Shown: piece after piece, positions 2 to 29,374 of the stretch
Position numbering within the stretch: the first letter of the stretch is position 1
How the letters are laid out: each line of letters opens with the position of its first letter
IMG/VR virus record: IMGVR_UViG_3300045921_000730
Span: 62,001 to 126,000 of that record
DNA: 64,000 nt
Direction: 5' to 3' (one strand)
Notes under the pieces: model-generated
The model's database searches: none
Seen by the model: only the letters and a program-made list of their open reading frames with translations
Told to the model about the DNA's origin: nothing
Made by a program: the position numbers and the translations under genes

Positions 2-997
2 ACATCTTGGTTAAAAGAAATACCAGCACAATGTTTACAACAGAAGTGTCAAGATTTGTCACAAGCATTAAAACAGTCTTTTAAGACAAATAAAAGCAAA
101 AAGGGATTTCCAAAATTTAAGTCAAAAAAGACTGATGAATCTGGCATCAGATTCCCATCATTCAAATTTGAGGGTGACAGGATCAAGTTACCTAAAATGT
201 CACAAGGAATCAAAATTAAGTTACATCGTGATTTGCTTGGGAAGAAATCATCAGTTACTATATTTCGAGATAAAACCGGAGTCTTCTGGGCATCTATACT
301 TGTTTCTATTGATGATGTTGTCCCAACGAACACTATTTCTAATGTGGTAGGTATTGATGTCGGATTAAAAGAATTCGCGGTCACATCAGACGCTGAAATA
401 ATCAAAAACCCGAAATTTCTAAAAAGAACGGCAAAGAAACTAGCAAAAGCTCAAGCAAAACATAGTAGAAAAGAAAAAGGTTCGTCAAACAAAGAAAAAC
501 AAAGAATTAAAGTTGCAAAAATTTACAGAAAAATAAGCAATCAACGTAAAGATTTTATCAATCAAGTTGCTAGTTCGATAGGCAAGACAAACGACTTGAT
601 TGTAGTTGAAAATCTCAATGTAAAAGGTATGATGAAAAATCCTAACCTAGCTAAATCTATTTCAGATGTTAGTTGGGGAATGTTTTTATCCGCTTTAAAG
701 TGGCATTGTAAGAAACGGGGCAAACACTTCGTTGAGATTTCACAATGGTATCCTTCAAGCAAAATGTGTTCATGTTGTGGAAATAAAAAATCAGATTTGT
801 CCTTGAGCGACAGAACATACGAATGTAAAGAATGTGGTTTCACGATGGATAGAGATTTAAATGCTGCCATTAACATTCTGAAAGAAGGTATCAACCTTTT
901 CAATACCGTAGGAACTACGGAAATTAACGCCTGTGGAGATATGAGTTCTGAAGTAGGGAACTCAGCCCAGGAAGCTAGTTGTTCTTTAGACAACTAG
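2..997 (+). CDS. tnpB: TnpB RNA-guided endonuclease (IS200/IS605 superfamily, family 1), 5'-truncated by the window edge
   Basis: RuvC-I GIDVG, RuvC-II VVENL, Zn ribbon CSCC...CKEC, RuvC-III DRDLNAAINI; the frame stays open back to position 2. Confidence 0.95.
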   Translation, partial: TSWLKEIPAQCLQQKCQDLSQALKQSFKTNKSKKGFPKFKSKKTDESGIRFPSFKFEGDRIKLPKMSQGIKIKLHRDLLGKKSSVTIFRDKTGVFWASILVSIDDVVPTNTISNVVGIDVGLKEFAVTSDAEIIKNPKFLKRTAKKLAKAQAKHSRKEKGSSNKEKQRIKVAKIYRKISNQRKDFINQVASSIGKTNDLIVVENLNVKGMMKNPNLAKSISDVSWGMFLSALKWHCKKRGKHFVEISQWYPSSKMCSCCGNKKSDLSLSDRTYECKECGFTMDRDLNAAINILKEGINLFNTVGTTEINACGDMSSEVGNSAQEASCSLDN

Positions 998-2467: not shown

Positions 2468-3824
2468 TTAGAAGCAAAACTGAAATTGTATATATAGATT
2501 ATAACCAATATAAAAATAATTTCTAAGAATGATCACCTACAAACTTCCAATTCAGCTAGCTGATGAAGAAAAGAAGATGATCCTTGAATTCCAAAGGATC
2601 CAATCTTCAATGATTCGCACTGCTTACAAACAAGCTGAATTTGGTTGTACCGAAATTTCTGTAAGACAGGAAATTCGAGATAGGTTCAAAAGTCAGCTTG
2701 ATTCCTGGTTCCAACAATCGGCGGTCAAATGTGGGATCGGAATGTTCAAGTCGGAACATGAAACAAATAAATCTGGTCGAATCTTTGGTGGCAAAGGCAA
2801 TCTGATTAGACGTGCAAAGGGACTTATTTCAAAAGAAGAATGGAAACAACGACGGCTTCTTCCGTTGTATCTAATTGGTGAAGCTCCTATCAAAGGCAAT
2901 CGCAAGTTCGAGTTCCACGAGGATCATGTCATTTTTAAGCCATTCAAAGGGACAAAGATCAAGATTGATCTTCCATCAATGAGGAAGAACTGGTCAAAGA
3001 TTTGGAAACAACTCTTGGTCATGGTTTCAGAAAAACAATTACCAATCACAGTCTCTCTAACTACTGATTCCATTTCCTTTTCTTTTGATGATGTTAAGGT
3101 AAAACAAGAGATCAGAAAGATTCCAAAGCCAATCAAGAATAGATATGCAGGCATTGATCTGAACCCAAATTATATTGGCATCTCGGTTTTTGATGGAACA
3201 AAGTTGATTGAAACCAAGATGTTCTCGTTGAAGTCATTGACTGGAAAACATGCCAGTTCATCAAAACTTGAACACGAAACAAGAGAAATCGGACATGCAA
3301 TAGGTAAGTGGCTTCAACATCTACGAGTTGATAAGCTATTTGTCGAAAAACTTGAATTCAAACAGGGTGACAAAGGTATTGGTAAAAACTTTAATCGCTT
3401 AACACAGAACCAATGGAAGAAAATAACTTTAAGGTCAATTCTAGCCAAATACTTCAAGTTATATGAAATCAATGCAGCATATTCCTCAACCATAGGAAAC
3501 ATTCTGCATCCCGAATTACCAGACCCGATAGCCGCAAGTACTGAGATTGCACAACGAGGCTACCGGCTTGTGATACTCAAGAACAAACAGTTCTATCCAA
3601 AACTACCAGCAATAAAGTATCTAGAGGACCTATGGAAGGAAACCAAGATACCTTTGGTCAATAACTGGAAAGAACTACATTCTTGGGTCAAAAACTCGAA
3701 ATTGAAATATCGAGTTCCGGTTCCAGACGAATCGGTTTTTAGAATTTTTCAGTCACCAGCTAGTTTGGTTGGTGTTCTATAGATTTGTATTGCTTATATG
3801 AATTTATAAGGAAAATTTATTTTA
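2468..3824 (+). mobile_element. TnpB-only element, family 2, copy 1
   Basis: Ends shared with 57797-59148 and 24880-25140: begins (TT)AGAAGCAAAACTGAA after ATATTA, ends GGAAAATTTATTTTA. Confidence 0.85.
2529..3782 (+). CDS. tnpB: TnpB-like nuclease lacking the Cys zinc ribbon (family 2)
   Basis: AGIDLNP (RuvC-I), FVEKL (RuvC-II), NAAYSSTIG...PDPIAASTEIAQRG (RuvC-III region). Confidence 0.8.
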   Translation: MITYKLPIQLADEEKKMILEFQRIQSSMIRTAYKQAEFGCTEISVRQEIRDRFKSQLDSWFQQSAVKCGIGMFKSEHETNKSGRIFGGKGNLIRRAKGLISKEEWKQRRLLPLYLIGEAPIKGNRKFEFHEDHVIFKPFKGTKIKIDLPSMRKNWSKIWKQLLVMVSEKQLPITVSLTTDSISFSFDDVKVKQEIRKIPKPIKNRYAGIDLNPNYIGISVFDGTKLIETKMFSLKSLTGKHASSSKLEHETREIGHAIGKWLQHLRVDKLFVEKLEFKQGDKGIGKNFNRLTQNQWKKITLRSILAKYFKLYEINAAYSSTIGNILHPELPDPIAASTEIAQRGYRLVILKNKQFYPKLPAIKYLEDLWKETKIPLVNNWKELHSWVKNSKLKYRVPVPDESVFRIFQSPASLVGVL

Positions 3825-3843: not shown

Positions 3844-4848
3844 ATGGAATATACATCTCTCGAAAACATTATTAAGCAGCACGTTTACCTTCCTTCACAA
3901 AGAAAAAATGGGTGGCATCCCGTTCTTTGTAAGATATGCAACGACCATGGCAAAAAAGGTAAACGTGCTGCATTTAAATTTGAAAACAATACAATAGGTT
4001 ATAACTGTTTTAATTGCGGACACACTGCTTTATATGATCCTTCTGTTCATCAAATAATACCAAAAAACATGGTGCAAGTATTGACTGCTTTCGGTATAGA
4101 AGAACATGAATGGAAACAATGTTTGTTGGAAAACTTAAAAAAACATCCAGAGTTTTCTAAGCAAAAACAAAAAGAAATAGATTATAACCCAACAGAAATA
4201 CAACTACCAGAGTTCTTTGTAGAACTAAAAAACGATACAAATGAGTGGTCGCAATATGCAATTGAATATTTAAAAAATCAAAGAGGAATTAATTATAAAG
4301 ATTATCCTTTTTACATTTGCAATAACATAACGAATAACCCTTTATCGAAAAAATGGTACGGAAGATTAATTATTCCAATTTATAAAGATAATAAAATAAT
4401 TTTTTATCAGGGAAGAGATTTATCAAATAAGCGAAAAACAAAATATCTTTCACCAAATGTAGAACGAAGTAAAGTACTATATGGTTTTGACCATTTATTG
4501 ACAAATGAACATTTACCACTATATATTTGCGAAGGGTTCTTTGATGCATTCTTATTGAATGGCGTTGCTGTATTTGGTAGAAAAATTTCCAAAGAACAAA
4601 TTTTTTGGATTAATAAATCACCAAGAAAAAAAGTTGTCGTACCTGATCGTTTTGGTGATAATAGCGATCAATTTGCTGAACAAGCACTAAAACTTGGTTG
4701 GGGCGTAAGTACTCCTGATATTGGGGACGCAAAAGATGTAAGCGAAGCGTTTATGAAATATGGGAAAATATATACACTGCAATCAATAAAAGAAAACACA
4801 CACGAAGGTCTTTTAGCACAAATTAAAACAAAATTTTATTGTGAATAA
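3844..4848 (+). CDS. DNA primase (T4 gp61-like)
   Basis: N-terminal CKIC..CFNC Zn finger; YQGR; TOPRIM ICEGFFDA; PD and KDVSE motifs. Confidence 0.88.
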   Translation: MEYTSLENIIKQHVYLPSQRKNGWHPVLCKICNDHGKKGKRAAFKFENNTIGYNCFNCGHTALYDPSVHQIIPKNMVQVLTAFGIEEHEWKQCLLENLKKHPEFSKQKQKEIDYNPTEIQLPEFFVELKNDTNEWSQYAIEYLKNQRGINYKDYPFYICNNITNNPLSKKWYGRLIIPIYKDNKIIFYQGRDLSNKRKTKYLSPNVERSKVLYGFDHLLTNEHLPLYICEGFFDAFLLNGVAVFGRKISKEQIFWINKSPRKKVVVPDRFGDNSDQFAEQALKLGWGVSTPDIGDAKDVSEAFMKYGKIYTLQSIKENTHEGLLAQIKTKFYCE

Positions 4849-4856
4849 AAAATATA

Positions 4857-5069
4857 ATGACAGAAGAAAATGAACAAATTCGTGCCGATAAATGGTGCAA
4901 TATGTCTCTTAATGAGTTGAACAAACAACGCGATATTTTGCTTCAAAAGATATCGATGTTATCGACGCTTGGAATTAATTCTTCACCAACGATCAACGCT
5001 CTATATAAAGCGCACCAACAAGCATACGATCATTTAAACGAAATTATTGATAATCGATTCAAAACATGA
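4857..5069 (+). CDS. Hypothetical protein
   Basis: 70-aa ORF with an ATGA overlap to the next gene. Confidence 0.6.
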   Translation: MTEENEQIRADKWCNMSLNELNKQRDILLQKISMLSTLGINSSPTINALYKAHQQAYDHLNEIIDNRFKT

Positions 5070-6880
5070 AAAACAAATCTTATACCGGAAAAGATATTGT
5101 CGAACTTACGGACAGAGAGCACGTTCGTTTAAGAACACAAGTTTATCTTGGAAATATGCATCCAACTTTATTTAATATTCCAAAGTTGGATAGTGATAAA
5201 CTTGAAATAGAAAGTGTTGAATTTGTACCAGCCGTTTATAAAGCAGTTGGAGAAATTATTGATAATTCAATCGACGAATTTGCTCAAATAAAAAATTCTA
5301 CTAAAACATTAACAATTGATTGTGAACCAGAAAACGGGAAATATACGATCAATGATACTGGTCGCGGCATTCCAATTGACCGACGACCCGATGGAACATA
5401 CACGCCAGAAATTGCTTTAAGTCGGTTGCGTGCAGGAAGAAACTTTAAGAACGAAAAAGAAGTTGGTGTAATTGGTATGAATGGTGTTGGTGCTGCTTGC
5501 ACTAACTATTGTTCTACAAAGTTTAAGGTAATTGTAAAGAGAGATAATCAAACATATACACAAACGTTTGAGGATGGTGCTCTCAAAATTTCTGAGCCTT
5601 CTTTAAGACAAACAAAGTCTGATAAAACAGGGACAGAAATTAGTTTCGAACTTGACAAAAGAGTTTTTAAAGATGTTTATATACCTTTTTCGGTAATGAA
5701 AAACAGAGCAATTGAAATTGCTTTAACAAATCCGGACGTTTCTGTAATTTTTAATGGTGAAAAAATAAAATATAAAAACGGATTCAAAGAATATCTTGAT
5801 AAAATTGCACCAGAAAAATATTTTCCTTTTTCTATTAAAACAGAAAACGTGCAAGGAACATTTTATGTAATTACTGACTGCATTGAAAACATTGATGAAC
5901 AAATGTTTACGTGGGTGAATAGTTCTTATCTGTTTGATGGTGGCAAGTGTAACACTCAATTTGTAAACGCGTTCTTCGAAAAGACAATTTCACATCTACA
6001 AAACGCTGCAAAAAAGAACAAGAGTGATATTACAAGGAATGATGTAAGAGAAAATCTTGTTGTATTTGCTAACTTAAAAATTAAAAATCCCGAATATGAT
6101 TCACAATCCAAAACAAGGTTAACAGGACCTGATTTACGAAAAGAAATCAATGAAGCAATTGATTCTCAGTGGAAAAATTTTGTTCGTAAAAATAATCCTT
6201 GGCTTGATGTTGTGCTTGAGCGAGCAATTCAACGACATCACACACAAGCAAACAAAAAAGCAATTGAAGAACATCAAAAACAATTAAAAAAGCGTGTTCC
6301 TGGATTACTTGATGCAACAAGTCAAATTCGTTCCGAGTGCCAGTTGTTGATCACTGAAGGAATGTGCTTGGATGAACGCACACCCATTAAAATTCTTAGC
6401 TCAGAAGGATTGGTTGATATACCTTTAAAAAATGTAAATATTGGTGATACTGTTATAACACACAAAAACAACTTAAAACCAATAACTAATATAACAAGGA
6501 CTCTAAAACGAGGAACTCGTATTACTACATCTATTGGGCAGGTCGTGTGTAGTGATCAACATCGATGGTTAGTGTACGATACTATTACACATAAATTTGA
6601 TTGGGCGCCCACAAATGCATTAAATGCCAATGTACATAAATTAGTAAGAAGCCGGTTAGGTGATTGGGTATATTGTGCAGAATTTGTAATAGAAAATAAC
6701 AAGGACGCAGATAATATTGTATATCCACGTGTAATAATAACCGCTTTTGAAAAAATTAAAACATCATTGACCCATACGTTTATTGTGTTGGATACTGACA
6801 CATACGCAGTCGTGGAAATTCCATTCTCTGAATTGGATCCTTCACACCACCTAATGCTGTTGTTTAAATCAAAAAAATAA
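5066..6880 (+). CDS. Type II topoisomerase large subunit N-part (GyrB/gp39-like ATPase) fused to the N-half of a split intein
   Basis: EIIDNSIDE, DTGRGIP, GMNGVG; TOPRIM start LITEGM followed by intein block A CLDERT. Confidence 0.92.
   Translation: MKNKSYTGKDIVELTDREHVRLRTQVYLGNMHPTLFNIPKLDSDKLEIESVEFVPAVYKAVGEIIDNSIDEFAQIKNSTKTLTIDCEPENGKYTINDTGRGIPIDRRPDGTYTPEIALSRLRAGRNFKNEKEVGVIGMNGVGAACTNYCSTKFKVIVKRDNQTYTQTFEDGALKISEPSLRQTKSDKTGTEISFELDKRVFKDVYIPFSVMKNRAIEIALTNPDVSVIFNGEKIKYKNGFKEYLDKIAPEKYFPFSIKTENVQGTFYVITDCIENIDEQMFTWVNSSYLFDGGKCNTQFVNAFFEKTISHLQNAAKKNKSDITRNDVRENLVVFANLKIKNPEYDSQSKTRLTGPDLRKEINEAIDSQWKNFVRKNNPWLDVVLERAIQRHHTQANKKAIEEHQKQLKKRVPGLLDATSQIRSECQLLITEGMCLDERTPIKILSSEGLVDIPLKNVNIGDTVITHKNNLKPITNITRTLKRGTRITTSIGQVVCSDQHRWLVYDTITHKFDWAPTNALNANVHKLVRSRLGDWVYCAEFVIENNKDADNIVYPRVIITAFEKIKTSLTHTFIVLDTDTYAVVEIPFSELDPSHHLMLLFKSKK
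6365..6880 (+). other. Split intein N-fragment (IntN, 171 aa)
   Basis: Cys1 at residue 434 (CLDERTPI..IGDTVITH), block B CSDQHRW; ends in a stop with no C-terminal intein motifs. Confidence 0.85.
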
Positions 6881-6887
6881 CAATTTT

Positions 6888-6929
6888 TCTCCCTCTGTTA
6901 TAAATATGTTTCAAGATAATAGAGGGAGA
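6888..6929 (+). promoter_or_regulatory. RBS-sequestering hairpin containing a late promoter, upstream of the endonuclease gene
   Basis: TCTCCCTCTGTTAT pairs with ATAATAGAGGGAGA (covers the SD); TATAAATA at 6899-6906. Confidence 0.75.
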
Positions 6930-6933
6930 CGAA

Positions 6934-8160
6934 ATGAAATACATCTGTGCACATACAAATAAACTAATTTTTATATCAAACATTACCAGCGAGTTTAAAG
7001 TTCAGCGAGCACTTAGGTCACATCTTACCAGAAACGGTATAAACACCGATATGCTTCTAATGGAAATGAGGCATAAATTGAATAAATGCAATTTTTGTGG
7101 GTCGCCAGTACCATATAGACTTAAATATAAAATAACTGGAAATATTATTAGTGTTGATGGATTTATTCCTGGAAAAAATTGTAATATATTAGCTCCATAT
7201 TACTGCGGTGGTAAAGAATGTCCTGGAAAACGTCTCAATCGTAACAGCCTATCTTTCGTGCAATTAGCATATGGTGTTGATGGTGATACTGCTCTTAAAT
7301 TAATTCATAGTCGTAACTCAACACCATTTTATCCAGAAAATCATGAATCGCTTAGTGATTATAAAAATTATCAACGACATCAAAGTCAAAAACAAACAAA
7401 AGAATCTATAGCAATGGGTGCATATCATAGATCTCTTGAATATTTGTGCAAAGTTCTTGGAGAAGAACTTGGTACTTTAGCTTATAAAACAATAAATGAA
7501 CGTAAAAAACATACAAAAGCAACATACATAGAAAGATATGGACCAGTAAAAGGTAGCATGTTGTGGATTGCCCAGAAAAATTTAAGATCTGTTACAACTA
7601 TAACATGCTTTAAAGATCTATATACTATAACTTTAAATGCTTTGACATCAGTATCAACAGACGAACTCAGAACAACAAGACCCGATTTGTTGATCAAGAA
7701 AAAATATGGATATCCCATAGTTAAACGGTATATCGATTTTAATACAACATTAGATGAAGTGTTGCATGTGGTATTCACTGACCACCCACACCTTAACATA
7801 TTTGACAAAGATTCATATACTCGTACCGTGTTTGGCCATTGGTCATATACGCCCGCAGGTACATTACTACGTAGCAAAGCGGAACGAGCTGTATATAACC
7901 TGTTAGTGGAGAACGGTTTACAAGAAGGCGTTGATTTTTTAATAGATAAACCATATAGTAAACAATCTAAACATAGATATGATTTTTATTTGATTAAGAT
8001 TGATACTTATATAGAAGTAGCTGGAATAATGAGTAATCCTGTATATGTACAAAACTTAATAACCAAAACTATTAATTATCCTGTTGTTATTGTTACGCCA
8101 AATAATTACATTACCAAAATAAAGGAACTCATAAATGCAATTAAATCAACACCTGTTTGA
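6934..8160 (+). CDS. Free-standing putative homing endonuclease (C-terminal Vsr/PD-(D/E)xK-like domain)
   Basis: RSKAE..YDFYL..YIEVAG motif; N-terminal Cys clusters; lies between split-intein halves. Confidence 0.7.
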   Translation: MKYICAHTNKLIFISNITSEFKVQRALRSHLTRNGINTDMLLMEMRHKLNKCNFCGSPVPYRLKYKITGNIISVDGFIPGKNCNILAPYYCGGKECPGKRLNRNSLSFVQLAYGVDGDTALKLIHSRNSTPFYPENHESLSDYKNYQRHQSQKQTKESIAMGAYHRSLEYLCKVLGEELGTLAYKTINERKKHTKATYIERYGPVKGSMLWIAQKNLRSVTTITCFKDLYTITLNALTSVSTDELRTTRPDLLIKKKYGYPIVKRYIDFNTTLDEVLHVVFTDHPHLNIFDKDSYTRTVFGHWSYTPAGTLLRSKAERAVYNLLVENGLQEGVDFLIDKPYSKQSKHRYDFYLIKIDTYIEVAGIMSNPVYVQNLITKTINYPVVIVTPNNYITKIKELINAIKSTPV

Positions 8161-8863
8161 ACTTATAGATATCGTAGATATTTCGCCTGCTGGTTATTGC
8201 AATATGGTAGACATATCTGTAGCCGATGATGAAAGTTTCATTCTTGCTAATGGTATAGTATCTCACAATTCAGCAAAAAGTCAAATTTGTGAGGCAAGAA
8301 ATCCACAAACAACAGCAGCATTTGCGTTACGCGGTAAAGTAAACAACGTGTATGGTATGACTCCAGCACAATTATTGAAAATGGAAAAATTAACAGATTT
8401 ACTTGCAGCAATTGGTTTAACACCAGGCAAAAAAGTTGCACGAAGCATGCTCCGTTATGGAAAAATTGTAATTGCAACAGATGCCGATTATGATGGGAGT
8501 GATATTTTTACACTTTTAATTAATGTATTTTATCAATATTGGCCTGAGTTGTTTGATAAAAACTATGATCCAATCATTTATCGACTAATAGCACCGAATG
8601 TAGTTGCATCCAAAAACGGAAAACGAGTACATTTTACAACAAGACAACAATATGAACTTGTAAAAGAAAAGTACAAAGGTTGGACAATTGAATACATGAA
8701 AGGTCTTGGTAGTATGCATAAAACAGATTGGGAAATGATCTTAAATGGTGAAACCGATACTCAAATCCCAATTATAGATGATGGAAAAATGAAAGACACA
8801 CTAACGCTGTTGTTTAGCGAAAATGCTGATAAACGAAAAGAATGGCTACAAAGTGACGAATAA
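8135..8863 (+). CDS. Split intein C-fragment (45 aa) fused to the topoisomerase II TOPRIM C-part
   Basis: MVDISVADDESFILANGIVSHN|SAKS, then LRGKVNN, ATDADYDG, YMKGLGS. Confidence 0.92.
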   Translation: MQLNQHLFELIDIVDISPAGYCNMVDISVADDESFILANGIVSHNSAKSQICEARNPQTTAAFALRGKVNNVYGMTPAQLLKMEKLTDLLAAIGLTPGKKVARSMLRYGKIVIATDADYDGSDIFTLLINVFYQYWPELFDKNYDPIIYRLIAPNVVASKNGKRVHFTTRQQYELVKEKYKGWTIEYMKGLGSMHKTDWEMILNGETDTQIPIIDDGKMKDTLTLLFSENADKRKEWLQSDE

Positions 8864-8904
8864 ACAACAACTAATTAAACAATAGAATTTAAAGAAATTA
8901 AACA

Positions 8905-10251
8905 ATGAAACCGCAATCATCAAAATACGTTGAAAACGAAAGAAGAGAGTATTCTCTCTACGTAATGACTAATAGAGCAATTCCGTCAATCACTGATGGA
9001 TTAAAAGCAGCTGGCAGAAGAGTACTTTGGACAGCAAAAGATGGAAAAAAATACAAGTCAGCAACGCTTGCTGGTGCTACAATGCCAATTCATCCGCACA
9101 GCAGTCCAGAAGGCGCTATTGATACGCTAGCAGCACCATATGGAAATAATATACCCTTATTCAAAGGTGATGGTGCATTTGGAACATTACTTAATCCAAC
9201 GTCATATGGTGCTAGTCGTTATACATCTGTTTCTGTTTCTGAATTTACAAAAGATGTAATGTTTAGAGATATAGAAATTGTTCCAATGATGGAAAACTAT
9301 GACGGAACACTAATGGAACCCGTACATTTTCTTCCATTGGTTCCTGTTGTTTTATTAAATCCATCGGAAGGTATTGCTGTTGGTTTTGCAACAAATATTC
9401 TTCCTCGTTCACTGGAAGATATTATTGTTGCTCAATTAACCTTCCTTAAAAAGGGCAAAAAATATATCTCAACGCCTGTCCCCACGTTTACACCAACTGA
9501 TGCTAGAGCTGTTTTATATGAAGAAACAGAAAAAGGAACAGCATATTACTTTCACGGAAAGTACGATCAATTAGATGCAACAACAATCAAAATTACACAA
9601 CTTCCATATGGTCAATCACACGAAAAAGTAATTGATAAAATTGAAGAATTGAAAGAAAAAGATATTGTTGTTGACTACGAAGATAATTCTAAAGATACAA
9701 TTTCCATCACAATTAAATTCAAGAAGGGTGTTCTTCGTGATATGACCGAAGAAGATGTTTTAAAATCGCTCGGTTTAATTTCAAAACAATTCGAAAACTT
9801 AAATGTTCTTGATTTCAGCCATAAGCGAATCGTAAATCTTACAGCATCAGATCTGATCGCAAACTTTACGGAATGGCGTTTAACGTGGTATCATAATAGA
9901 TATCAAAGACTAAAAGATTTACTGCAAGAAGAACTCCAAAAATATTTAGATATTAGAACAGCAATTAAACACCAAGTAAACAATATAGCAAGAAAAACTC
10001 AATCAAGAGCAGAGCTCAAAGATTTCTTAAAAGAAATTAAAATAATTAATATTGATTATATTGCTGACTTACCAATTTATCGTTTCACTGAAGAAGAAAG
10101 AATTAAAAATGAACAAAGAATTAAAGAAGCAACTGAAAAAATGGAATATTATGACATGCTATTATCAAACGAAGAAGAAAGAAAAAAAATCTATATTCTA
10201 GAGCTTGAAGAAGTGTTGAAAAAATATACAAAGGGAAATTATAATACTTAA
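8905..10251 (+). CDS. Type II topoisomerase cleavage subunit (GyrA/gp52-like)
   Basis: RAIPSITDGLK, HPH, GASRYT active-site Tyr, GIAVGFATNI. Confidence 0.92.
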   Translation: MKPQSSKYVENERREYSLYVMTNRAIPSITDGLKAAGRRVLWTAKDGKKYKSATLAGATMPIHPHSSPEGAIDTLAAPYGNNIPLFKGDGAFGTLLNPTSYGASRYTSVSVSEFTKDVMFRDIEIVPMMENYDGTLMEPVHFLPLVPVVLLNPSEGIAVGFATNILPRSLEDIIVAQLTFLKKGKKYISTPVPTFTPTDARAVLYEETEKGTAYYFHGKYDQLDATTIKITQLPYGQSHEKVIDKIEELKEKDIVVDYEDNSKDTISITIKFKKGVLRDMTEEDVLKSLGLISKQFENLNVLDFSHKRIVNLTASDLIANFTEWRLTWYHNRYQRLKDLLQEELQKYLDIRTAIKHQVNNIARKTQSRAELKDFLKEIKIINIDYIADLPIYRFTEEERIKNEQRIKEATEKMEYYDMLLSNEEERKKIYILELEEVLKKYTKGNYNT

Positions 10252-10342
10252 TACACACAATACAGGCCTTATTGTGGTGATGCGATTCAATCGGCAACCA
10301 CTAAATGTTTAAAGAACAACAAGTTCCCTTGAGAGAAATTAT

Positions 10343-10648
10343 ATGAATCAAAAGTTAATTTTTTCAAACAAAACATTCAGAGACATATCGACAAGAGCAT
10401 TTCAACTTTCTTTAAAAGATGGTAGAGATATTCGTTCTCGATACATAAAAGCAAAACATGTTAGTTTTTACAAAGCAGAGAAGTTATCAAAAAATGATAT
10501 GATAGAAATTATTTTACAAACCGAATTTGCGCCAGAACTTGTCGATGAATATTTAGAAAACGTCAAAGTTTGGCGTAAATACGAGCAACAAGCCATTGAA
10601 GACTGGCTACAAAATATAATGGAGGAAAAGGAAACAACACATGAATAA
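10343..10648 (+). CDS. Hypothetical protein
   Basis: 101-aa ORF in the operon direction. Confidence 0.6.
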   Translation: MNQKLIFSNKTFRDISTRAFQLSLKDGRDIRSRYIKAKHVSFYKAEKLSKNDMIEIILQTEFAPELVDEYLENVKVWRKYEQQAIEDWLQNIMEEKETTHE

Positions 10649-10889
10649 GCACTTTGCTTCAACAAAATCAAAAGTTTTGAATGATATTATTCGTATGAAT
10701 AAAGATCAATTAATCGATCTGTATGGGATTTCGTTTGAAGACGACGGGACTGTTTACGATTCAACAGAAATGAAAACGTTCTCCAGTTTAAGAGAATGGG
10801 CAAATTATATTGCTGAGCTTGAAGAAGAAGACAATTACGGTTCTTTTCAAAAGCGTCAGAGCAAATATACTTTTGACGATGAATACTAA
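10641..10889 (+). CDS. Hypothetical protein
   Basis: 82-aa ORF with SD, overlapping the previous stop. Confidence 0.65.
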   Translation: MNKHFASTKSKVLNDIIRMNKDQLIDLYGISFEDDGTVYDSTEMKTFSSLREWANYIAELEEEDNYGSFQKRQSKYTFDDEY

Positions 10890-11296
10890 TTGAAAAATTG
10901 TATTGTCGAAACAAATGAATAATGCTTAGTTGTTGGAAGTATTATATAATTATGTTGTGACAACATGGCATTACTTTCCATTGGTTTTTTGCCTGGAGAC
11001 AAAGACCATGTAATATGGTAAATCTTACCATCTTTTCTAATTGTTGTGCCCTCAACTTCAACAACCAATGCTTCAACACCATTAATGTCTTGATATCCAA
11101 CAACTACAATTGTTGGAGACCACAAGTGTTGAGGTACCTGATTGATAGCACTAGAGGGAACATCAAACTCATATGTGACGTGATGAGCAACAACACGATC
11201 ATATTTTGGCGGAAACAAATCTAACAGCTCGCTTCTGACATTGTTGGGAAGAGGATATGCAAGATATCCTTGTTTTTTAAGGTGTTGTAATTTCAT
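10886..11296 (-). CDS. 2H phosphoesterase-like protein
   Basis: Two HxT motifs (HHVTY, YHITWS). Confidence 0.65.
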   Translation of the reverse strand: MKLQHLKKQGYLAYPLPNNVRSELLDLFPPKYDRVVAHHVTYEFDVPSSAINQVPQHLWSPTIVVVGYQDINGVEALVVEVEGTTIRKDGKIYHITWSLSPGKKPMESNAMLSQHNYIILPTTKHYSFVSTIQFFN

Positions 11297-11424
11297 ATTA
11301 ATTCCCGCAAGGAAACCTGATGTTCTTTAGACGTCAGGATGAATTGCGGACCTTTCATTAGTTAAATTGAAAAATTCTAACGGAGCAGGAAAACCGCGTT
11401 GTCTTTAGCTACGCGGTAGTTTAT
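11297..11424 (+). mobile_element. ORF-less IS200/IS605-type mini-element inserted in an ATGA stop/start overlap
   Basis: Left-end hairpin GGAAACCTGATGTTCTTTAGACGTCAGGATGAA, right-end hairpin ..GCGGTAGTTTAT; removing it gives minus-strand GGA-CTA-TGA overlapping ATG-AAA. Confidence 0.8.
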
Positions 11425-12008: not shown

Positions 12009-15000
12009 TTAACCACATTTACTGGAACCACAATCTGCACACTTTTCGCATCCTTCCTGATAAATGATGTTATGAGATCCACAGTTTTGGCAGACTTTAC
12101 CTTCAATCTTCTCACCGTCCTTAATAAAGGATGATAGGTATTTCTTGATTGAAAACAAGAACGAACCTGCATACGCGTCTTCAACTTTATCAAGAGTTGT
12201 TACGATATTACGAATTAACACACCATGACGAAGATTGAGTGAAATCATACGAGCGACCTTTGTAACATTATTATCACCTGCAATCTTTTCGAGAACTTTG
12301 TTGATGTGCTTTTCAGGAATATTCTTCGTACGTGCAAGATCTGTTAACAACTCAACGGCATTGTTGGTTAATGTGTTCTTTTCGTGACTGTTTGTATGAA
12401 CAAAGAAACCAAACGGGCGTGTTTTGTTATCATCCCACCACAAAACCGTAAGATACCATTTTTTACCTTCTGCCTTAAGTGTTTTCACAGTTGCTGGTGC
12501 ACTGTCAGGAAGTTGTACATCTTCAAGAACGATTTCTTCATCGATGTCACTAATATTTTTTTCGTCTTTAGCAGCAAGAACTGTTGTCATTGTTCCTGTA
12601 CGATATGTAGTAACACCTTTAACATAACCTGAAATATATGCATCAAGGTAAATGTTTTTGAAATCTTCAAAGCTATAATCGTTTGGAACATTAACGGTCT
12701 TACTCATAGCACTATCGACCCAACGAGCAAATCCCTTCAAATCATTTACATGATCTTGAACGCTCATACCAAGAGCGGTTGCAGCCCAGTCTGCTGTCGG
12801 ATCCCATTCGCCGATCTTTTTCATAAAACGAACACCATAATCTTCACATAACACTTCCTTTGTAAGACCACGATTCTTGTCAATTTTATAGACTGTACCA
12901 TCGGGTGCGACGCCACGAAGAATTTCTTCGTCACCCTCTTTAGTAAATTTAAACATTTCTGTCTCATGCCATGCACCCTCATACCACTTTGGACACACAT
13001 CAGCAATTTCTTCCGGCATTGTGTTTACGATTACTGTACGAATGTATTCATGTAAAAACACTGGTTCAAGACCACCGGAAACCACATTTGCTAAAATAGA
13101 AGTGTTTCCCGTAGGTTGAATTGAAAGAAGTGAACTATTACGAATACCTGTTGTGCGAAGTTTTTCCATATATTCGTCCGAAAGATTAAGCAACTTTATA
13201 AAAGGACCTTCCGCATGCTTCACAGGATCACAATAAGAAAACTTACCTTTCTCGACAGCCAAATCAATTGAAGCTTCATAAGCTGTTCTGGCAATTGTAC
13301 TCATTACTTGTTCACGAAGTTGATTAGCGCGATCTGATGCAAAGCGAGCTTTCAACATATAAAGCGCTGACCCCCAGCCTAAAATACCAACGCCAATACG
13401 ACGCTTGTTTTTAATTGAATGTGCATATTCGGGAAGTGGTGCATTTGTCAAATCGTTAATATTATCAAGAAAACGAACAAGATATTTTGTATACTTCTTG
13501 ATTAATTCTAGATCAAACCCTGAACGATCCGAATTAACGAATTGTGTTAAATTCAAAGAACCAAGATTACATACACCAGAAGGTGCTAATGTCTGTTCGC
13601 CGCAATTTCCTGTATAACACCACTCAGTAGGAAATACATGTTCATTATGCATGACACTAATATCCCACACATCTGCAGATTCAACAGGCTTAACAGAAAC
13701 TACTTCAACAAAGTCTAAATTGTGGTGGGTTCTTTTATCAGACACTTGACTAATAATATTTTTAAGTTTTTGTTGTTTAACTGGATGAGAAATATCAAAA
13801 ACGTTAATAAATTTTAAAACTGCCTGTCCACCAACAGCAACATCCCAGCGATCATATGATTTATTATATTCTTCACCATTTGGAAACGATACATTTTTTG
13901 TCGTTGTATTCCATATCATTGCTGGAACCCCTGCAAAACTAATTAGTTTTGCAAATTCTTGTGCTAAATCTTTTCGCGAAGTTGTTAATGTAATTTTCAA
14001 ATTGTTTGGATCATCGCTAACACATCCGTCCGCGCTCAATAAACCATCAACGAATCCTTTGATATATTGATCGTTGCTTTCCCAAACACTTTGTGGAATT
14101 TTTTTATTACCAGGAGTTAATTTGTACTTGTTTAATAATATATCCACTAACTCCTCGTCGCTAAATTGAAAATACAATTCACTAGCGCCATAATTTTGTC
14201 GTTGAATTAATGTTGATGGTAATTTTTTCATTCTGTTTACTATAGATAGTACTCGTTCTGCCATTGAACGTTCTTGCATACTAAATGCAATACCACAATT
14301 GTAGCGACCATCAGACAATTCACTGATCCAACCATCTCCAAAGAAATATCCAACAAAGAATCCTTCATCATATGTTAGGGTAAGATCACCATAGATACCA
14401 ATATCTTCATTTCTATTCAATGGAATAAGATCTCCAATTTTAAGATCTTTGGTATCTACCTTATAGATGCGTTTCATCTTTGAATCATACACAGGCCAGC
14501 GATGTTCTCTAGTTGCTCGAATCATTTTATTTGCCCCAAAAGAAATTTCTAACAATTCTTGATTCTTTCCAGATAAACGACACGAAGCTAGAGCCCATGT
14601 ACCATCCAAAGATTTCACCTCAAATTGTTTTCCTTCTAGTGTTTCAATAGGAAAAATTCCTTGTTTTGTATGAACAAGAGTACCAGCTGGCATTGATGGA
14701 TTTGTTGCAAATACTGTTTCTGCATAATTTAATGGTAAGAAATAATTAGCACGATCAAGAAACAATACGCCTGGCTCAGCACGATTGTAAGTGCTTTCCA
14801 TAATCAAATTCCATAACCATGAAACAGAAATTGTGTTGTATACTTTTACAGGATATCCCTTTGATTTCCACAACTTAATATTTCCATCCCAATCAGTTTT
14901 GTATTGAGGATGTGTGGTGTCGGGAAAAATTAAATTCCACTTATCCAATTCCATGCGCTCTTGTTGTAAAACAGTATTGTTTGTATCGTCTGTGTTTTTT

Positions 15001-17294
15001 AAAATAGAATCAATTTCATTAATACGAACAACGCGCTCCATAAAATCATCTGTACAATTTACAGACACATTAAATTTTGTAAGACGACCCGGTTGTTGTT
15101 TTGCTGTAACAAATTCAACAATATCTGGATGCCAGCAATTATGAATAAACACACCATTAGCTGCGAAATTATGATAATCAGGCATCGAAATATCAAACGC
15201 TTCTTGTTCAATACTTTCTTCAACACGAATGATATGTCGACTACCAGAAACCGACAGATCAAGGTAATCGTTTAGCATTCTCTTGTTCAGAGCACAGAGA
15301 CTGTCGTTGTTTTGTAAATCCTTTGCTTTTTTAAATGTTCCATCACTTAACATAAACTCGTGATCTGGAGTACACTCAATAAAGTCATCATTGTCAAAAA
15401 CAACTTTGATTGTTTTCTTTACTCCCTTCGACCAAACAAGAAGAGCCTGACGAACATATACATTACCTAAACCGTCAGTGCAGTAAAGGAAGGGGTTTTT
15501 TCCAACCAGCTCTTTTACAGGAATCTTTCCTTCAGTAGTATTGATTGGGGTATTTCCTCCAATGCAGTCCAAAACGCCCATCATGGCACCCTTACGGATT
15601 TTTCCCTTTGCTTTTGTGTTGTTGCTTTTCTTACCAGATCCTGAAGTAATAATTTCAGAACTTTTATCAAAAAGTTCCATATACTTTACAGCACCGGGTG
15701 TCTCCACACCAATGCCGTGAATAAAAGCGCCACGCGGCCGAATGTATGAGAAGTTTTCTCCCCAACCACCTTCCGACTTTAGAGTATGTGCTTGTGCACG
15801 AAGATGTGATAGGATACCGTCCAAGCTGTCAGCATCATGTTCTACACGGGGACCTACATAACAATTGTGGACAACCACATTATTAACAACGTAACTTTCA
15901 TCTTCGTTAACAGAAATGTTAAAAACATAACCACTATACCATTCATCGGCCCGTTCAGGTTCAACCACGAATCCAAAAGCAGCTTTTTTTGGTCCAGTTG
16001 TTGAATCTTTTTTAACAGTAAAATTCAATCGATCATCCTCGTAGACTTTACTCATTTGCTGTCTAAATTCTTTAGTAAATGTTGCACCAGCAGATAGTCT
16101 TTTTCCTCTTAATCTACAAGGAATACCTACTATTGTCATTAATGTTTGAATTTCTGTTAATAGCTGTGAATTAATCAATTCTATATGAACCTCTCCTTGT
16201 TCATCGACAAACCCATCGCCATCAAACACGCCCAACAAAAAGCTTTGTTGTACGGATGAAGGGCTATTCCAGATTACTTCTGGAATTGACTTCGTGTCAA
16301 AACCGGCACCTACCAAACGATGTAATACTGTTGCAATAATTTGTGATACTTTCCTGACATAGGTTGTGTTATTTGAACTGTAAATTATATTTGGTGTAAT
16401 ACCAAATACTTGTTCAAACAATTCAACCATATAATCAACATGAGATGTTTCTTTTGAAGAATTGTAGGCAATATTAAATGCGTCAACCTCATACAGTGAA
16501 GTTTGATTATTTTTGAACGTGCAACCATCAGCAACAAATCGACCGAGCAAATACGCAAACTTAGAATCAACATCAATGAAACGTTTTACTTCATGGCCAT
16601 ACTTAACCCCTGTTGCTCCTTGTCCGCCAACGTAATGTTTATTTGTTTTTATGCTTGTTTCATTAAACACAATCATGTTTTGATTAACATAATCCGCAAG
16701 AAGTTCAACCAAATCCATCACAACAGGAGATTTATCGCTAGTATGTTGGGCTAAAAACAACGTTTTCGTTTCTGATGATACTGTCCATGTGTCGTTTCCT
16801 TGATAATAAGGATGTTCAGGCGTACTGATAATATCTCCAGAAAGATAATTGGATGAAAATCGTTGCACGGGGCCTGTATAAAAGCGTGACATTGTGTTAT
16901 CAACACGACGATATCGTCCTTTATGAGTAAGGACCCAATCGCCCACTTCAACATCACAAATTTTCTTTGGACCGTTAGACGTTAACACCTCAACGTCCGG
17001 ATGAAAACAATTCATCAGCGTGGTGCCACCCCACTCTGTTCCTGCGTTAGCATAAATACGACCACCGGCTGTTGCTTTAAAGTTTGTTAAAAGATCATAA
17101 AACTTTTCCGTCCACTCTTTTCGTAATTCTTCTGTTTTTTCAACAGAAGCTGTTGCTGATGCCACGCGATAAAGCGTATCATTAATTGTTAAATCATTAT
17201 AGTCCTTATATGTTGATGCCCAAACTTCTTCAGAAAAACTGTCTTGAAAAGTTGTAGAAGTTATATCATTTGTTTGTTGTTTTGTTCGTGACAT
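12009..17294 (-). CDS. nrdJ: Class II (B12-dependent) ribonucleotide reductase with three inteins
   Basis: After removing inteins: GGRIYANAG, TLMN|CYV, EPGVLFLD, TNP|CGEQ, CNLGS, IQPTG, SKTVN, KGVTTYR; C-terminal CQNC..CADC..KC. Confidence 0.93.
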   Translation of the reverse strand: MSRTKQQTNDITSTTFQDSFSEEVWASTYKDYNDLTINDTLYRVASATASVEKTEELRKEWTEKFYDLLTNFKATAGGRIYANAGTEWGGTTLMNCFHPDVEVLTSNGPKKICDVEVGDWVLTHKGRYRRVDNTMSRFYTGPVQRFSSNYLSGDIISTPEHPYYQGNDTWTVSSETKTLFLAQHTSDKSPVVMDLVELLADYVNQNMIVFNETSIKTNKHYVGGQGATGVKYGHEVKRFIDVDSKFAYLLGRFVADGCTFKNNQTSLYEVDAFNIAYNSSKETSHVDYMVELFEQVFGITPNIIYSSNNTTYVRKVSQIIATVLHRLVGAGFDTKSIPEVIWNSPSSVQQSFLLGVFDGDGFVDEQGEVHIELINSQLLTEIQTLMTIVGIPCRLRGKRLSAGATFTKEFRQQMSKVYEDDRLNFTVKKDSTTGPKKAAFGFVVEPERADEWYSGYVFNISVNEDESYVVNNVVVHNCYVGPRVEHDADSLDGILSHLRAQAHTLKSEGGWGENFSYIRPRGAFIHGIGVETPGAVKYMELFDKSSEIITSGSGKKSNNTKAKGKIRKGAMMGVLDCIGGNTPINTTEGKIPVKELVGKNPFLYCTDGLGNVYVRQALLVWSKGVKKTIKVVFDNDDFIECTPDHEFMLSDGTFKKAKDLQNNDSLCALNKRMLNDYLDLSVSGSRHIIRVEESIEQEAFDISMPDYHNFAANGVFIHNCWHPDIVEFVTAKQQPGRLTKFNVSVNCTDDFMERVVRINEIDSILKNTDDTNNTVLQQERMELDKWNLIFPDTTHPQYKTDWDGNIKLWKSKGYPVKVYNTISVSWLWNLIMESTYNRAEPGVLFLDRANYFLPLNYAETVFATNPSMPAGTLVHTKQGIFPIETLEGKQFEVKSLDGTWALASCRLSGKNQELLEISFGANKMIRATREHRWPVYDSKMKRIYKVDTKDLKIGDLIPLNRNEDIGIYGDLTLTYDEGFFVGYFFGDGWISELSDGRYNCGIAFSMQERSMAERVLSIVNRMKKLPSTLIQRQNYGASELYFQFSDEELVDILLNKYKLTPGNKKIPQSVWESNDQYIKGFVDGLLSADGCVSDDPNNLKITLTTSRKDLAQEFAKLISFAGVPAMIWNTTTKNVSFPNGEEYNKSYDRWDVAVGGQAVLKFINVFDISHPVKQQKLKNIISQVSDKRTHHNLDFVEVVSVKPVESADVWDISVMHNEHVFPTEWCYTGNCGEQTLAPSGVCNLGSLNLTQFVNSDRSGFDLELIKKYTKYLVRFLDNINDLTNAPLPEYAHSIKNKRRIGVGILGWGSALYMLKARFASDRANQLREQVMSTIARTAYEASIDLAVEKGKFSYCDPVKHAEGPFIKLLNLSDEYMEKLRTTGIRNSSLLSIQPTGNTSILANVVSGGLEPVFLHEYIRTVIVNTMPEEIADVCPKWYEGAWHETEMFKFTKEGDEEILRGVAPDGTVYKIDKNRGLTKEVLCEDYGVRFMKKIGEWDPTADWAATALGMSVQDHVNDLKGFARWVDSAMSKTVNVPNDYSFEDFKNIYLDAYISGYVKGVTTYRTGTMTTVLAAKDEKNISDIDEEIVLEDVQLPDSAPATVKTLKAEGKKWYLTVLWWDDNKTRPFGFFVHTNSHEKNTLTNNAVELLTDLARTKNIPEKHINKVLEKIAGDNNVTKVARMISLNLRHGVLIRNIVTTLDKVEDAYAGSFLFSIKKYLSSFIKDGEKIEGKVCQNCGSHNIIYQEGCEKCADCGSSKCG
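13605..14696 (-). other. Intein 3 of NrdJ (364 aa, LAGLIDADG; Ser1, ends GN)
   Basis: NP|SMPAGT...GYFFGDG..GLLSADG..VWDISV..YTGN|CGEQ. Confidence 0.88.
15138..15566 (-). other. Intein 2 of NrdJ (143-aa mini-intein)
   Basis: LD|CIGGNT..CTPDHEF..FDISM..FIHN|CWHPD. Confidence 0.9.
15864..17009 (-). other. Intein 1 of NrdJ (382 aa, LAGLIDADG)
   Basis: MN|CFHPD..TPEHPY..GRFVADG..GVFDGDG..VVHN|CYV. Confidence 0.92.
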
Positions 17295-27697: not shown

Positions 27698-29374
27698 ATG
27701 AGTTATATTTCAGCAATTACAAAAGAGAATGATGTTCTCGTGTGGGAACGCACAACCGAAGGTCGTGTTATAAAAGAATATACGGCTCCATATTACTTTT
27801 ATTATCAAGATCCGGCCGGTAAATATACAACAATATATAATGAAAAAGTATCAAAAATTCAACTCCAGACACGTCAAGAATATTACAAAGTCAAAAAAGA
27901 ATTTGAAGAAGACGGCATTCAATTATATGAAAGTGATATATCGCCAGATATTCGTGTTTTATCAAAACATTATTACAATAAACCCGCACCAAAACTTCAT
28001 ATTACTCTTTACGATATTGAGGTAGACTACAATCCTGACATTGGCTTTGCGTCACCTTCAAATCCATATGCACCAATTAATTCAATTGCAATTGTACATA
28101 ACTGGTCTAAAGACCTTGTTGTGCTAACAGTTCCTCCAACTCCTAATTGGACAAGCGAACAATTACTAAAAGAAGTGAATAACGCAGTACCTGAGGTTCC
28201 TGTCCCATCAAAATATAACACAAACATTATTATTTGTAAAAATGAGCATGAACTTTTATTAAACTTTCTTGCTGAAATTCAAGACTCCGACGTACTTGCA
28301 GGATGGAACAGCGATATATTTGATACACCATACATTGCAGCAAGAATTGCTATAGTTCTTGATAAACAAAAATTAAGTCTAACAACATCAGAAATTCCTG
28401 ATCCGTATGGTTCATCAAAAAAACAATTCAAATGGAAAGAAGATCCAAACACCTTAATGAACAAATGTCGTTTTCTAAAAAAACTCGACTTTGAACAATG
28501 CATGCCAAAATGGCGCATTGCTCTTAATGGTGAAAAAACAAAAGTATATGGCATTATGTTTGATACACAAGGCCGTATTATAACAGACTATATGGATCTA
28601 TACAAAAAATACGAACCGGGTGAGCGCTCTTCATATAAATTGGCTGCAATTGAACAAGAAGTTGATCTTAACCTTCCAAAGCTGGAATACAGTGGATCGT
28701 TACATAATCTTTATAGAAACAATTATCCTTTTTTTATTCGTTATAACATTCGAGATACTGAAATTCTGGACGGGTTCGAAGAAACGCTTGGTTATATTGA
28801 TCTAGCAAATCAGATGTATCATATTTCTACATGTTTATATAGCCACGTAACAGGTACATTAAAACTTGCTGAATTTGCAATTATTAATTATTGTCATCAT
28901 GTAATTAAAAAAGTTGTACCAAATACAAAATCACCCGAAATTGATAGACCAATTGCTGGAGCTCTTGTTTTATTACCACAGGTTGGTCTTCACGAATGGG
29001 TTGGATCAATTGATATCAATTCGCTATATCCAAGTTCGATTAGATCGATTAATATTTCACCAGAGACATTAAGAGGTCAGTTTATCGAAGAAGGAAAGGC
29101 CACAGAAGAAATTGCAAGTCAAACTCTTACACCTCTTACTTTGGTGTTAGAAACTGGTCAAAAACTTGTTAAGTCAGCAAGCGAATGGAACGAATGGTTA
29201 ACAAAAAAGAAATGGGCTATTAGTGGTTATGGAACAGTATTTGATCAAAATGAACAAGGTATTATTCCTGCGATTCTTACAGATTGGTATGCTACTCGTA
29301 AAAAATATCAAGCAAACAAGAAAGAAGCTGAAAAAAAGCTATCTACAATATTAAACAAGTATAAAAACGTTTAA
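27698..29374 (+). CDS. Family B DNA polymerase, N-terminal gene (exonuclease + motif A, ends in the fingers domain)
   Basis: YDIEV, GWNSDIFD, YNIRD, DINSLYPS. Confidence 0.92.
   Translation: MSYISAITKENDVLVWERTTEGRVIKEYTAPYYFYYQDPAGKYTTIYNEKVSKIQLQTRQEYYKVKKEFEEDGIQLYESDISPDIRVLSKHYYNKPAPKLHITLYDIEVDYNPDIGFASPSNPYAPINSIAIVHNWSKDLVVLTVPPTPNWTSEQLLKEVNNAVPEVPVPSKYNTNIIICKNEHELLLNFLAEIQDSDVLAGWNSDIFDTPYIAARIAIVLDKQKLSLTTSEIPDPYGSSKKQFKWKEDPNTLMNKCRFLKKLDFEQCMPKWRIALNGEKTKVYGIMFDTQGRIITDYMDLYKKYEPGERSSYKLAAIEQEVDLNLPKLEYSGSLHNLYRNNYPFFIRYNIRDTEILDGFEETLGYIDLANQMYHISTCLYSHVTGTLKLAEFAIINYCHHVIKKVVPNTKSPEIDRPIAGALVLLPQVGLHEWVGSIDINSLYPSSIRSINISPETLRGQFIEEGKATEEIASQTLTPLTLVLETGQKLVKSASEWNEWLTKKKWAISGYGTVFDQNEQGIIPAILTDWYATRKKYQANKKEAEKKLSTILNKYKNV

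Follow-up and report, generated by a model that had tools for sequence, protein, structure and literature searches.

Fractured genes, in which a host gene is broken into two open reading frames (ORFs) by the halves of a naturally split intein with an endonuclease gene between them, were described by Dassa, London, Stoddard, Schueler-Furman and Pietrokovski in 2009 at the gp41-1, gp41-8, NrdJ-1, IMPDH-1 and NrdA-2 loci, the hosts being gp41, IMPDH, DnaE, NrdA, NrdJ, DNA ligase and terminase, with no topoisomerase among them (PMC2677866). The nearest report of the kind of locus considered here is that of the split PolB intein of the jumbo phage MIJ3. A type II topoisomerase gene broken by other means is found in phage T4 (gp39/MobA/gp60), where a mobile endonuclease gene divides it and ribosomes bypass 50 nt in translation. 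Cellular genomes are known to carry contiguous inteins in GyrB, 33 bacterial ones having been counted (PMC4760082), and the Ssp GyrB intein of Synechocystis, which ends GVFVHN, has been used with an extein starting SAG (PMC2794532). We have analysed a 64,000-nt stretch of viral DNA (the window: positions 62,001 to 126,000 of the IMG/VR record IMGVR_UViG_3300045921_000730), in which the gene for the large subunit of a type II topoisomerase is interrupted by a 1905-bp cassette carrying the two halves of an intein and a third, endonuclease-like gene. It is very likely that this is a mobile cassette that splits the topoisomerase II gene of a large hot-spring phage, that trans-splicing rebuilds the subunit, and that the gene in the middle homes the cassette.

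Junctions and splicing residues of the split topoisomerase

All the elements of the locus lie on the + strand. The N piece (5066-6880) encodes 604 aa, that is, 433 aa of extein followed by a 171-aa N-terminal intein half (IntN) with its stop codon at 6878-6880. The N-extein (5066..6364) corresponds to residues 1-433 of the topoisomerase II large subunit, with the GHKL ATPase, the transducer and the start of the TOPRIM domain, matches the Pfam families DNA_gyraseB and HATPase_c, and ends ...LLITEGM. At residues 433/434 the sequence ...ECQLLITEGM passes into CLDERT, so that Cys1 of the intein is Cys434 (nt 6365). The C piece (8135-8863) encodes 242 aa, namely a 45-aa C-terminal intein half (IntC, 8135..8269) and 197 aa of extein. 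IntC ends ...ILANGIVSHN (ESFILANGIVSHN) and is followed by SAKSQ..., with Ser+1 at nt 8270. This residue is the Ser of the TOPRIM motif EGxSA and opens the C-extein (8270..8863), which holds the rest of TOPRIM and the C-terminal domain (Pfam Toprim and TOPRIM_C). EGxSA is interrupted after its third residue, directly before the Ser, and the inserted cassette (nt 6365-8269) consists of IntN, a stop, the middle gene (6934..8160, free-standing, endonuclease-like, 408 aa), a new start and IntC. The start of IntC overlaps the 3' end of the middle gene by 26 nt (8135-8160) in a different frame, and overlaps of 4-35 nt between middle gene and C piece are found in relatives.

Joined to one another, the exteins give a protein of 433 + 197 = 630 aa reading ...LLITEGM-SAKSQ.... 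The profile of PHROG 543 (DNA topoisomerase II large subunit) aligns at positions 19-444 with the N piece and at 445-638 with the C piece, crossing the break at 444/445 with no position lost or gained, and intact alleles in public data read ...LITEG(L/D/E)/SAKSQ... (a slash marks the junction). Since the PHROG 543 junction, the intact alleles and an empty-site allele described below agree, the junction is not a chance pattern. The first-pass annotation, made from the letters and their ORFs, had placed the cut of the TOPRIM motif at LITEGM/...SHN/SAKS, and these three lines of evidence bear it out; its ORF coordinates and the lengths it gave for IntN, the middle ORF and IntC (171, 408 and 45 aa) proved exact to the residue when ORFs and translations were rechecked.

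At the level of sequence the locus has everything that class 1 protein splicing calls for, and its relatives keep these features throughout the family. In an alignment of 59 diverse IntN homologues the only invariant positions are Cys1, the block A nucleophile (59/59), and His66 of the block B motif SDQH (59/59), position 63 being Ser or Thr in 57/59. In IntC, which carries block F (NMVDISVADDESF) and block G (NGIVSHN), residues D26, F35, G40, H44, N45, Ser+1 (S46) and Ala+2 are invariant in 44/44 relatives, and HN/SA is present in 52/52 of the stand-alone C pieces detected. The relatives of both halves are highly diverged, with 23-50% identity, yet none of the class 1 splicing residues varies. 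The best PDB sequence match of IntN is the gp41-1 intein, with CSDQH aligned to CSEEH of gp41-1. An AlphaFold2 (AF2) model of IntN built on the 59-sequence alignment is all-beta, with a predicted local distance difference test score (pLDDT) of 94 and a predicted template modelling score (pTM) of 0.80, and a Foldseek search of the PDB with this model returned at the top Hedgehog HINT, MchDnaB-1, gp41-1, Prp8 and Npu DnaE-N (probability 0.92-1.0). The E-values of these HINT matches are 0.03-0.3, because only about 100 of the 171 residues superpose, at roughly 4 angstroms.

The halves of split inteins usually carry complementary charges, and the family means of net charge are +4.4 for the IntN core and -9.2 for the strongly acidic IntC (-7 here). 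In comparisons with the closest relatives (45-58% identity), nonsynonymous divergence (dN) was 0.13-0.18 for IntC, 0.45-0.49 for IntN, 0.42-0.56 for the middle ORF and 0.23-0.27 for the extein; synonymous divergence (dS) is saturated in these comparisons, so that the dN/dS ratios are qualitative only. On these sequence comparisons IntN, IntC and the middle ORF are all held by selection, IntC more tightly than the extein. Taken from the conserved residues, trans-splicing most likely rejoins the two topoisomerase pieces.

Empty alleles and the gene between the intein halves

The window derives from hot-spring and microbial-mat metagenomes, and contigs from four DNA runs of such material were compared with window positions 4800-9300. 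A contig of run X7 differs from the window at 15 of 1527 nt over 4800-6326, continues with 36 other letters and resumes at 8268. It reads in frame DATSQNRSECQILITEGD/SAKSQICEAR, and thus holds an uninterrupted gene with the canonical motif EGDSA (...ITEGD/SAKS), without exactly nt 6365-8269. In a third sample (run X10) a contig ends at 6326 of the window alignment and continues as the empty allele of X7 does. The cassette is therefore polymorphic for presence and absence at a precise site among close relatives (X7 and X10). In the 39 nt upstream of the site only 21/39 positions are identical between the empty and the occupied alleles, identity further out being about 99%, and the changes in this flank are mostly synonymous, together with I421N, L427I and M433D. 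Such a recoded 39-nt flank looks like the mark of a co-conversion tract or of target-site immunity at a homing site, and it suggests that the recognition sequence of the endonuclease would be on the N-extein side.

Other strains carry the cassette. In the cassette strain of run X5 the flanks are about 1% different from the window (20 listed sites), with at most one difference (of 21) in 6135-8310, a pattern that by our own binomial estimate would arise by chance with a probability of about 5e-6. The near-identity of the cassette in strains with flanks about 1% divergent (the X1 and X5 strains) therefore suggests, as far as these contigs go, that the cassette has spread recently between strains. 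Run X7 also yielded cassette-bearing contigs that are 91-94% identical to the window over IntN and the middle gene, and the cassette and its host gene therefore differ in history.

The product of the middle gene was compared with intervening ORFs at loci from IMG/VR, Logan, ENA and JGI. An N-terminal, Cys-cluster/helical region of about 200-210 aa, with a CxxC...C...C cluster, an NxNS.EF motif and helical YG..G repeats, is common to 13/13 of the ORFs compared (373-465 aa; E 1e-11 to 1e-86), and two close homologues (58% and 45% identity) lie at the same position in the same fractured gene. Three kinds of C-terminal domain follow this region: the type of the window, YDF...YIE.AG (also in L003, L006, L012, L015, L027, L033 and L037); a Vsr-like type with the signature IIE(F/Y)NG..(W/F/Y)H of the I-Bth0305I/Vsr-like (EDxHD) enzymes (L016, L040, L051 and L053); and HNH (L001 and L035). 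The Vsr-like ORFs share the N-terminal region with the window ORF, and the strand pair YDF...YIE.AG is similar, whereas the signature His is missing in the window, which reads YIEVAGIMS and so lacks the catalytic His. In an AF2 model of the 408-aa ORF (pLDDT 71), residues 315-405 have the alpha-beta-beta-beta-alpha-beta order of a PD-(D/E)xK nuclease, and the conserved E317, D338, D350, E361 and K378 sit on this core (aa ~315-405). A weak match to PHROG 9084 ('homing endonuclease') was found with no usable PHROG family; weak ESM features (DUF559, Vsr and PvuRts1I_N) agree with the modelled topology, as do the weak Foldseek matches given below. From the modelled topology, the 408-aa ORF is a probable PD-(D/E)xK-type homing endonuclease of an undescribed family. 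Two other assignments were considered and rejected: membership in the EDxHD (I-Bth0305I) family, given the lack of the signature His, the hhalign result given below and the lack of a PDB sequence match, and an identity of the N-terminal region with DUF7487, a lead from ESM-Atlas for which an hhalign comparison with the window's own DUF7487 protein gave no support.

The 53-nt spacer that precedes the middle gene (6883..6935 in the RNA) contains a perfect 14-bp hairpin (-21 kcal/mol, z = -5.9) with arms at 6888-6901 and 6916-6929, in which the Shine-Dalgarno (SD) sequence of the middle gene, GAGGGAG (6922-6928), is paired with CTCCCTC. The element TATAAATA lies at 6899-6906, from the end of the left arm into the loop. 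L006 and L003, the two closest relatives, retain the hairpin, TATAAATA and a 13-nt block CTGTTATAAATA in spite of differing arm sequences, and an anti-SD arm, an ATAAATA-like loop and an SD arm are also found in L012, L015, L027, L033 and L053, which makes eight loci in all. TATAAATA is the late-promoter element of T4 and Aeh1, and the control logic has been taken from the T4 and Aeh1 work cited in PMC2677866. By this analogy early read-through transcripts probably leave the middle gene untranslated, with its SD paired in the hairpin. Four of the seven TATAAATA sites in the window are just upstream of start codons.

The locus most likely works as follows, where splicing, the activity and target of the endonuclease, and the timing of expression are all things that we infer. 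Two polypeptides would be made, one of 433 aa of extein with IntN and the other of IntC with 197 aa of extein. A class 1 HINT domain would form as IntN, through its basic core, binds the acidic IntC, and trans-splicing to a 630-aa subunit would follow, carried out by Cys1, the His of block B, the Asp of block F, the terminal His-Asn and Ser+1. Early read-through transcripts would give both topoisomerase pieces and no endonuclease, since the hairpin pairs its ribosome-binding site, and a late transcript starting at TATAAATA inside the hairpin would free the SD and allow the endonuclease to be translated. The endonuclease would probably cut cassette-free alleles near the insertion point, and repair would copy the cassette in.

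Several results weigh against this account and have to be set beside it. The 408-aa ORF has no Pfam match and no PDB sequence match, either as a single protein or as a profile; Foldseek with its C-terminal domain returned 3hrl and 4oq2 with a probability of 0.77-0.84 but E-values of 0.4-0.6, a search with the whole low-pTM model was not significant, and hhalign of the window-type domain with the Vsr-like intervening ORFs was not significant either (probability 2.6%). TATAAATA is not enriched in the window (seven sites against 7.8 expected), and it is therefore position and conservation that speak for a T4-type late promoter. The HINT fold comparison covers the N half, the IntN/IntC complex not being one chain. 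Finally, the pieces of T4 topoisomerase II are active when assembled without a covalent link, and an enzyme of this class can therefore do without strict covalent joining. One alternative is that the intein halves have lost splicing and only dock the two topoisomerase fragments to each other non-covalently, on the model of the Aeh1 NrdA split or of T4 gp39/gp60. Fragmented phage enzymes that assemble without splicing do exist (PMC3045599), and IntN is predicted to be well folded by itself. The natural occurrence of the T4 enzyme in pieces points the same way. Docking alone, however, needs none of the class 1 catalytic residues, all of which are invariant in 44-59 relatives at 23-50% identity, and the break falls inside the catalytic EGxSA loop, so that we regard this explanation as improbable.

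A somewhat better, if still small, chance must be given to the possibility that the intein does trans-splice while the 408-aa ORF is inactive as a homing endonuclease, decaying or domesticated, in a cassette that is now inherited only vertically. The window type has no recognised nuclease motif or family, and the middle gene has been lost, with the split intein kept, in L013, L014, L029/L030, L048 and the P0056 contig (with gaps of 85-358 nt or overlapping ORFs). Against this, the ORF is intact with dN well below dS at 45-58% identity, conserved acidic residues are placed by the model on a PD-(D/E)xK-like core, the regulatory hairpin is conserved, and there are the presence or absence of the cassette within one lineage, the recoded 39-nt flank and the near-identical cassette in strains about 1% divergent. 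Least probable of all, to the point of being scarcely credible, is a removal of the interruption at the level of RNA or translation, by a group I intron or a bypass like that of T4 gene 60, with the intein motifs being incidental. The T4 gene 60 bypass, which adjoins a mobile endonuclease gene in a topoisomerase, speaks for the idea, but an Rfam scan of 4800-9200 returned no family at E <= 1, and therefore no recognisable group I or other self-splicing intron; moreover, the 171 and 45 aa together make a conserved HINT domain with all the splicing residues and a confidently modelled IntN, and the two are separated by an ORF of 1.2 kb that has an SD of its own.

Duplicated IntN module, relatives and neighbouring genes

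The split intein that would rejoin the topoisomerase has an IntN made of two parts. The core (6365..6658; intein aa 1-98) is gp41-1-like, with block A (CLDERT) and block B (CSDQH, His66), and these first ~98 residues align with the 88-aa IntN of gp41-1. The extension (6659..6880; aa 99-171 plus the stop) contains at residues ~123-165 (SLTHTFIVLD...) a repeat of the block-B module of residues ~52-94, in an identical register in every member. The internal repeat has a z-score of 3.6 here, 5-6 in L003 and L013, and 11.1 in L014, where EHKWFVYD...NLKKDKHKLV is repeated as EHKFAVYD...NLNKDIHFLV. The second (S/T)xxH motif is kept in 47/59 IntN relatives and the first His in 59/59, and the first copy is therefore the catalytic one. 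The second motif, THTF, which is preferred as block B by the Pfam intein model, was rejected as the real block B on these counts and because gp41-1 aligns with the first copy. The extension is acidic, as IntC is (net charge -3 here, family mean -4.0), and is confidently folded in the AF2 model as mirrored strands. It is present in about 70 of about 77 split members and missing from seven split members and from the contiguous P0207. The extension may, as a tentative and rather doubtful proposal, be a functional adaptation to the split state; purely as speculation, it could help the basic IntN core to stay soluble and folded, in the manner of an intramolecular cap or chaperone, or it could gate the binding of the acidic IntC. 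If this were true, naturally split inteins with a pre-folded N half would form a structural class of their own.

The window locus is not a singleton but, as judged by sequence searches, one member of a large, diverse and unannotated family of large-phage topoisomerases. A length-filtered search with the C piece gave 52 clusters (90% identity) of stand-alone proteins of about 240 aa on contigs of up to 520 kb, each beginning with a 39-54-aa IntC that ends ...SHN/SA. An IntN profile run against 1.84 billion cluster representatives had 624 matches at E <= 1e-3, and about 70 of the best 150 (clusters defined at 50% identity) are topoisomerase N pieces of ~560-640 aa that read ...EG(D/L/N/E...)/C(L/I)xExT and carry an IntN of 150-187 aa; seven matches carry a short IntN of 95-101 aa. 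P0207 is a contiguous mini-intein at the same phage site without the duplicated module, while in P0240 a different host protein contains a related intein that bears LAGLIDADG. Most family members come from contigs of large phages, and the 80 IMG/VR matches listed include about 25 loci with IntC and the junction.

A megablast of the region against GenBank phages gave no match, and tblastn searches of 50,697 GenBank phage records with IntN, IntC and the endonuclease found only LR756500.1, an unannotated 462-kb metagenomic phage whose protein had not been used in building the profile alignments. Representative genomes spanning 185,579 species of bacteria and archaea yielded the split on a single binned contig of 167 kb. 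Cellular GyrB inteins at the same site were sought in genome contigs with the DNA pattern HN/SAGGSAKQ, with no match, and a profile scan for cellular GyrB inteins returned MCM, aRF1 and other inteins, and one probable phage contig, L017. The source names of the family proteins make no mention of an intein.

Some relatives show further features. In L001 (LR756500.1, 462 kb) the GyrA-like subunit is fractured as well (8682-11404): ...YHHGD/CGDYDT... opens an IntN, a 300-aa Vsr-like/DUF7487 ORF follows, and then an IntC ...KIVVHN/SALNQ..., and both topoisomerase subunits are therefore split in one genome. In L003, a relative from JGI, the N-extein is in two overlapping frames (656-1570 and 1552-2460; 304 + 302 aa), perhaps through a frameshift, a fault in assembly or yet another break. 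ORFs of 707 and 716 aa that start with IntC are present in the IMG/VR contigs L049 (1471-3594) and L051 (4004-6154), possibly as fusions of the C piece with the GyrA-like subunit.

Immediately downstream of the C piece, the window encodes an intact medium subunit of topoisomerase II, GyrA/gp52-like (8905..10251, +; Pfam DNA_topoisoIV, E = 4.6e-75), which is the partner of the spliced large-subunit product. A family-B DNA polymerase is also in two ORFs, with the exonuclease and the early polymerase motifs at 27698-29374 (+) and YGDTDS at 31403-32485 (+), separated by an ORF of 538 aa on the opposite strand (29408-31024, -) that has DUF7487, the Vsr-like motif IEYNGLYWH and a Mom-like domain; no intein motifs are seen at the broken ends of the polymerase, and the genome thus also holds a gene fractured without an intein. 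Contiguous inteins are found in a 1761-aa ribonucleotide reductase large subunit at 12009-17294 (-), with Hint_2 at aa 96-139, Hom_end at 337-395, Intein_splicing at 611-719 and LAGLIDADG at 978-1130. Two 417-aa ORFs, at 2529-3782 (+) and 57853-59106 (+), are 92% identical to each other and matched nothing in Pfam or the PHROGs; TATAAATA stands 27 nt upstream of the second, and the pair may be a repeated mobile gene. At the window edge, 56-997 (+) is a TnpB-type gene with OrfB_IS605 and a Cas12f1-like TNB domain. Positions 40849-53253 (-) hold an ORF of 4134 aa followed by one of 1168 aa.

Comparison with known systems

The topoisomerase locus has the layout of the fractured genes (PMC2677866): the host gene is in two ORFs bounded by intein halves, a hairpin with TATAAATA sequesters the ribosome-binding site of the endonuclease, the 3' end of the endonuclease gene overlaps the start of the downstream piece, and derivatives without the homing endonuclease gene exist. 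The remark of the first-pass annotation that this layout has been described for phage genes is thus correct, and the match extends to the hairpin and the 3' overlap. Nor did it know of the layout in a type II topoisomerase, and in agreement with this no topoisomerase is in the published host list (PMC2677866) and a full-text literature search found no naturally split intein in a phage type II topoisomerase. It had proposed moreover a candidate new split-intein pair with Ser+1, of which Ser+1 (44/44) and the new host enzyme stand, whereas the family is widespread and the insertion point is probably not new. The nearest solved intein by sequence, gp41-1, has Ser+1 as well. Between the intein halves there is an endonuclease-like gene, a conserved 408-aa ORF that has HNH or Vsr-like homologues at the same position and whose own C-terminal domain is a candidate nuclease by its topology and weak fold or feature matches; unlike the endonucleases of the fractured genes, it is neither GIY-YIG nor demonstrably Vsr-like. 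The length of IntN is 171 aa here and 150-187 aa in the family, against 88-105 aa in the fractured genes (PMC2677866), because the block-B module is duplicated.

The T4 system, gp39/MobA/gp60, is similar in that a mobile endonuclease gene breaks the same subunit of the enzyme, in or close to TOPRIM and likewise in a large phage, and different in that it has no intein and the pieces remain separate. The match to PHROG 7229, which we take to be a gp60-like family, begins at residue 82 of the C piece, 36 residues after Ser+1, and because of this the T4-type break is, by sequence, probably at a different site (~36 residues downstream) and of a different mechanism. Type II topoisomerase would thus be broken by mobile endonuclease genes in two ways, the other being the ribosomal bypass of T4. 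The GyrB inteins share with the window intein the class 1 type and the homologous subunit, Ssp GyrB having Ser+1 too, but they splice in cis from a single ORF in cellular genes. The insertion point EGD/SA is probably that of the contiguous Ssp GyrB intein, whose site is presumably EGD/SA(GG).

The type II topoisomerase of large phages would join the short list of genes fractured by a split intein with a homing endonuclease. As the family is large and diverse and is not annotated as an intein in the sources consulted, many contigs of large phages may have topoisomerase genes that are mistaken for truncated or duplicated ones. Both occupied and empty alleles are present in natural populations, and the recoded flank would offer a ready-made pair of target site and immunity. 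Many purified split-intein precursors splice poorly or aggregate (PMC11923092); for protein engineering, the family would offer dozens of orthogonal, gp41-1-like Ser+1 split inteins from hot-spring phages with an N half predicted to fold alone. What goes beyond the known kind is the duplicated module of IntN and a set of endonucleases with one N-terminal region and three nuclease domains, and the latter, if our reading is true, would show one site-recognition module recombined with three unrelated nuclease domains.

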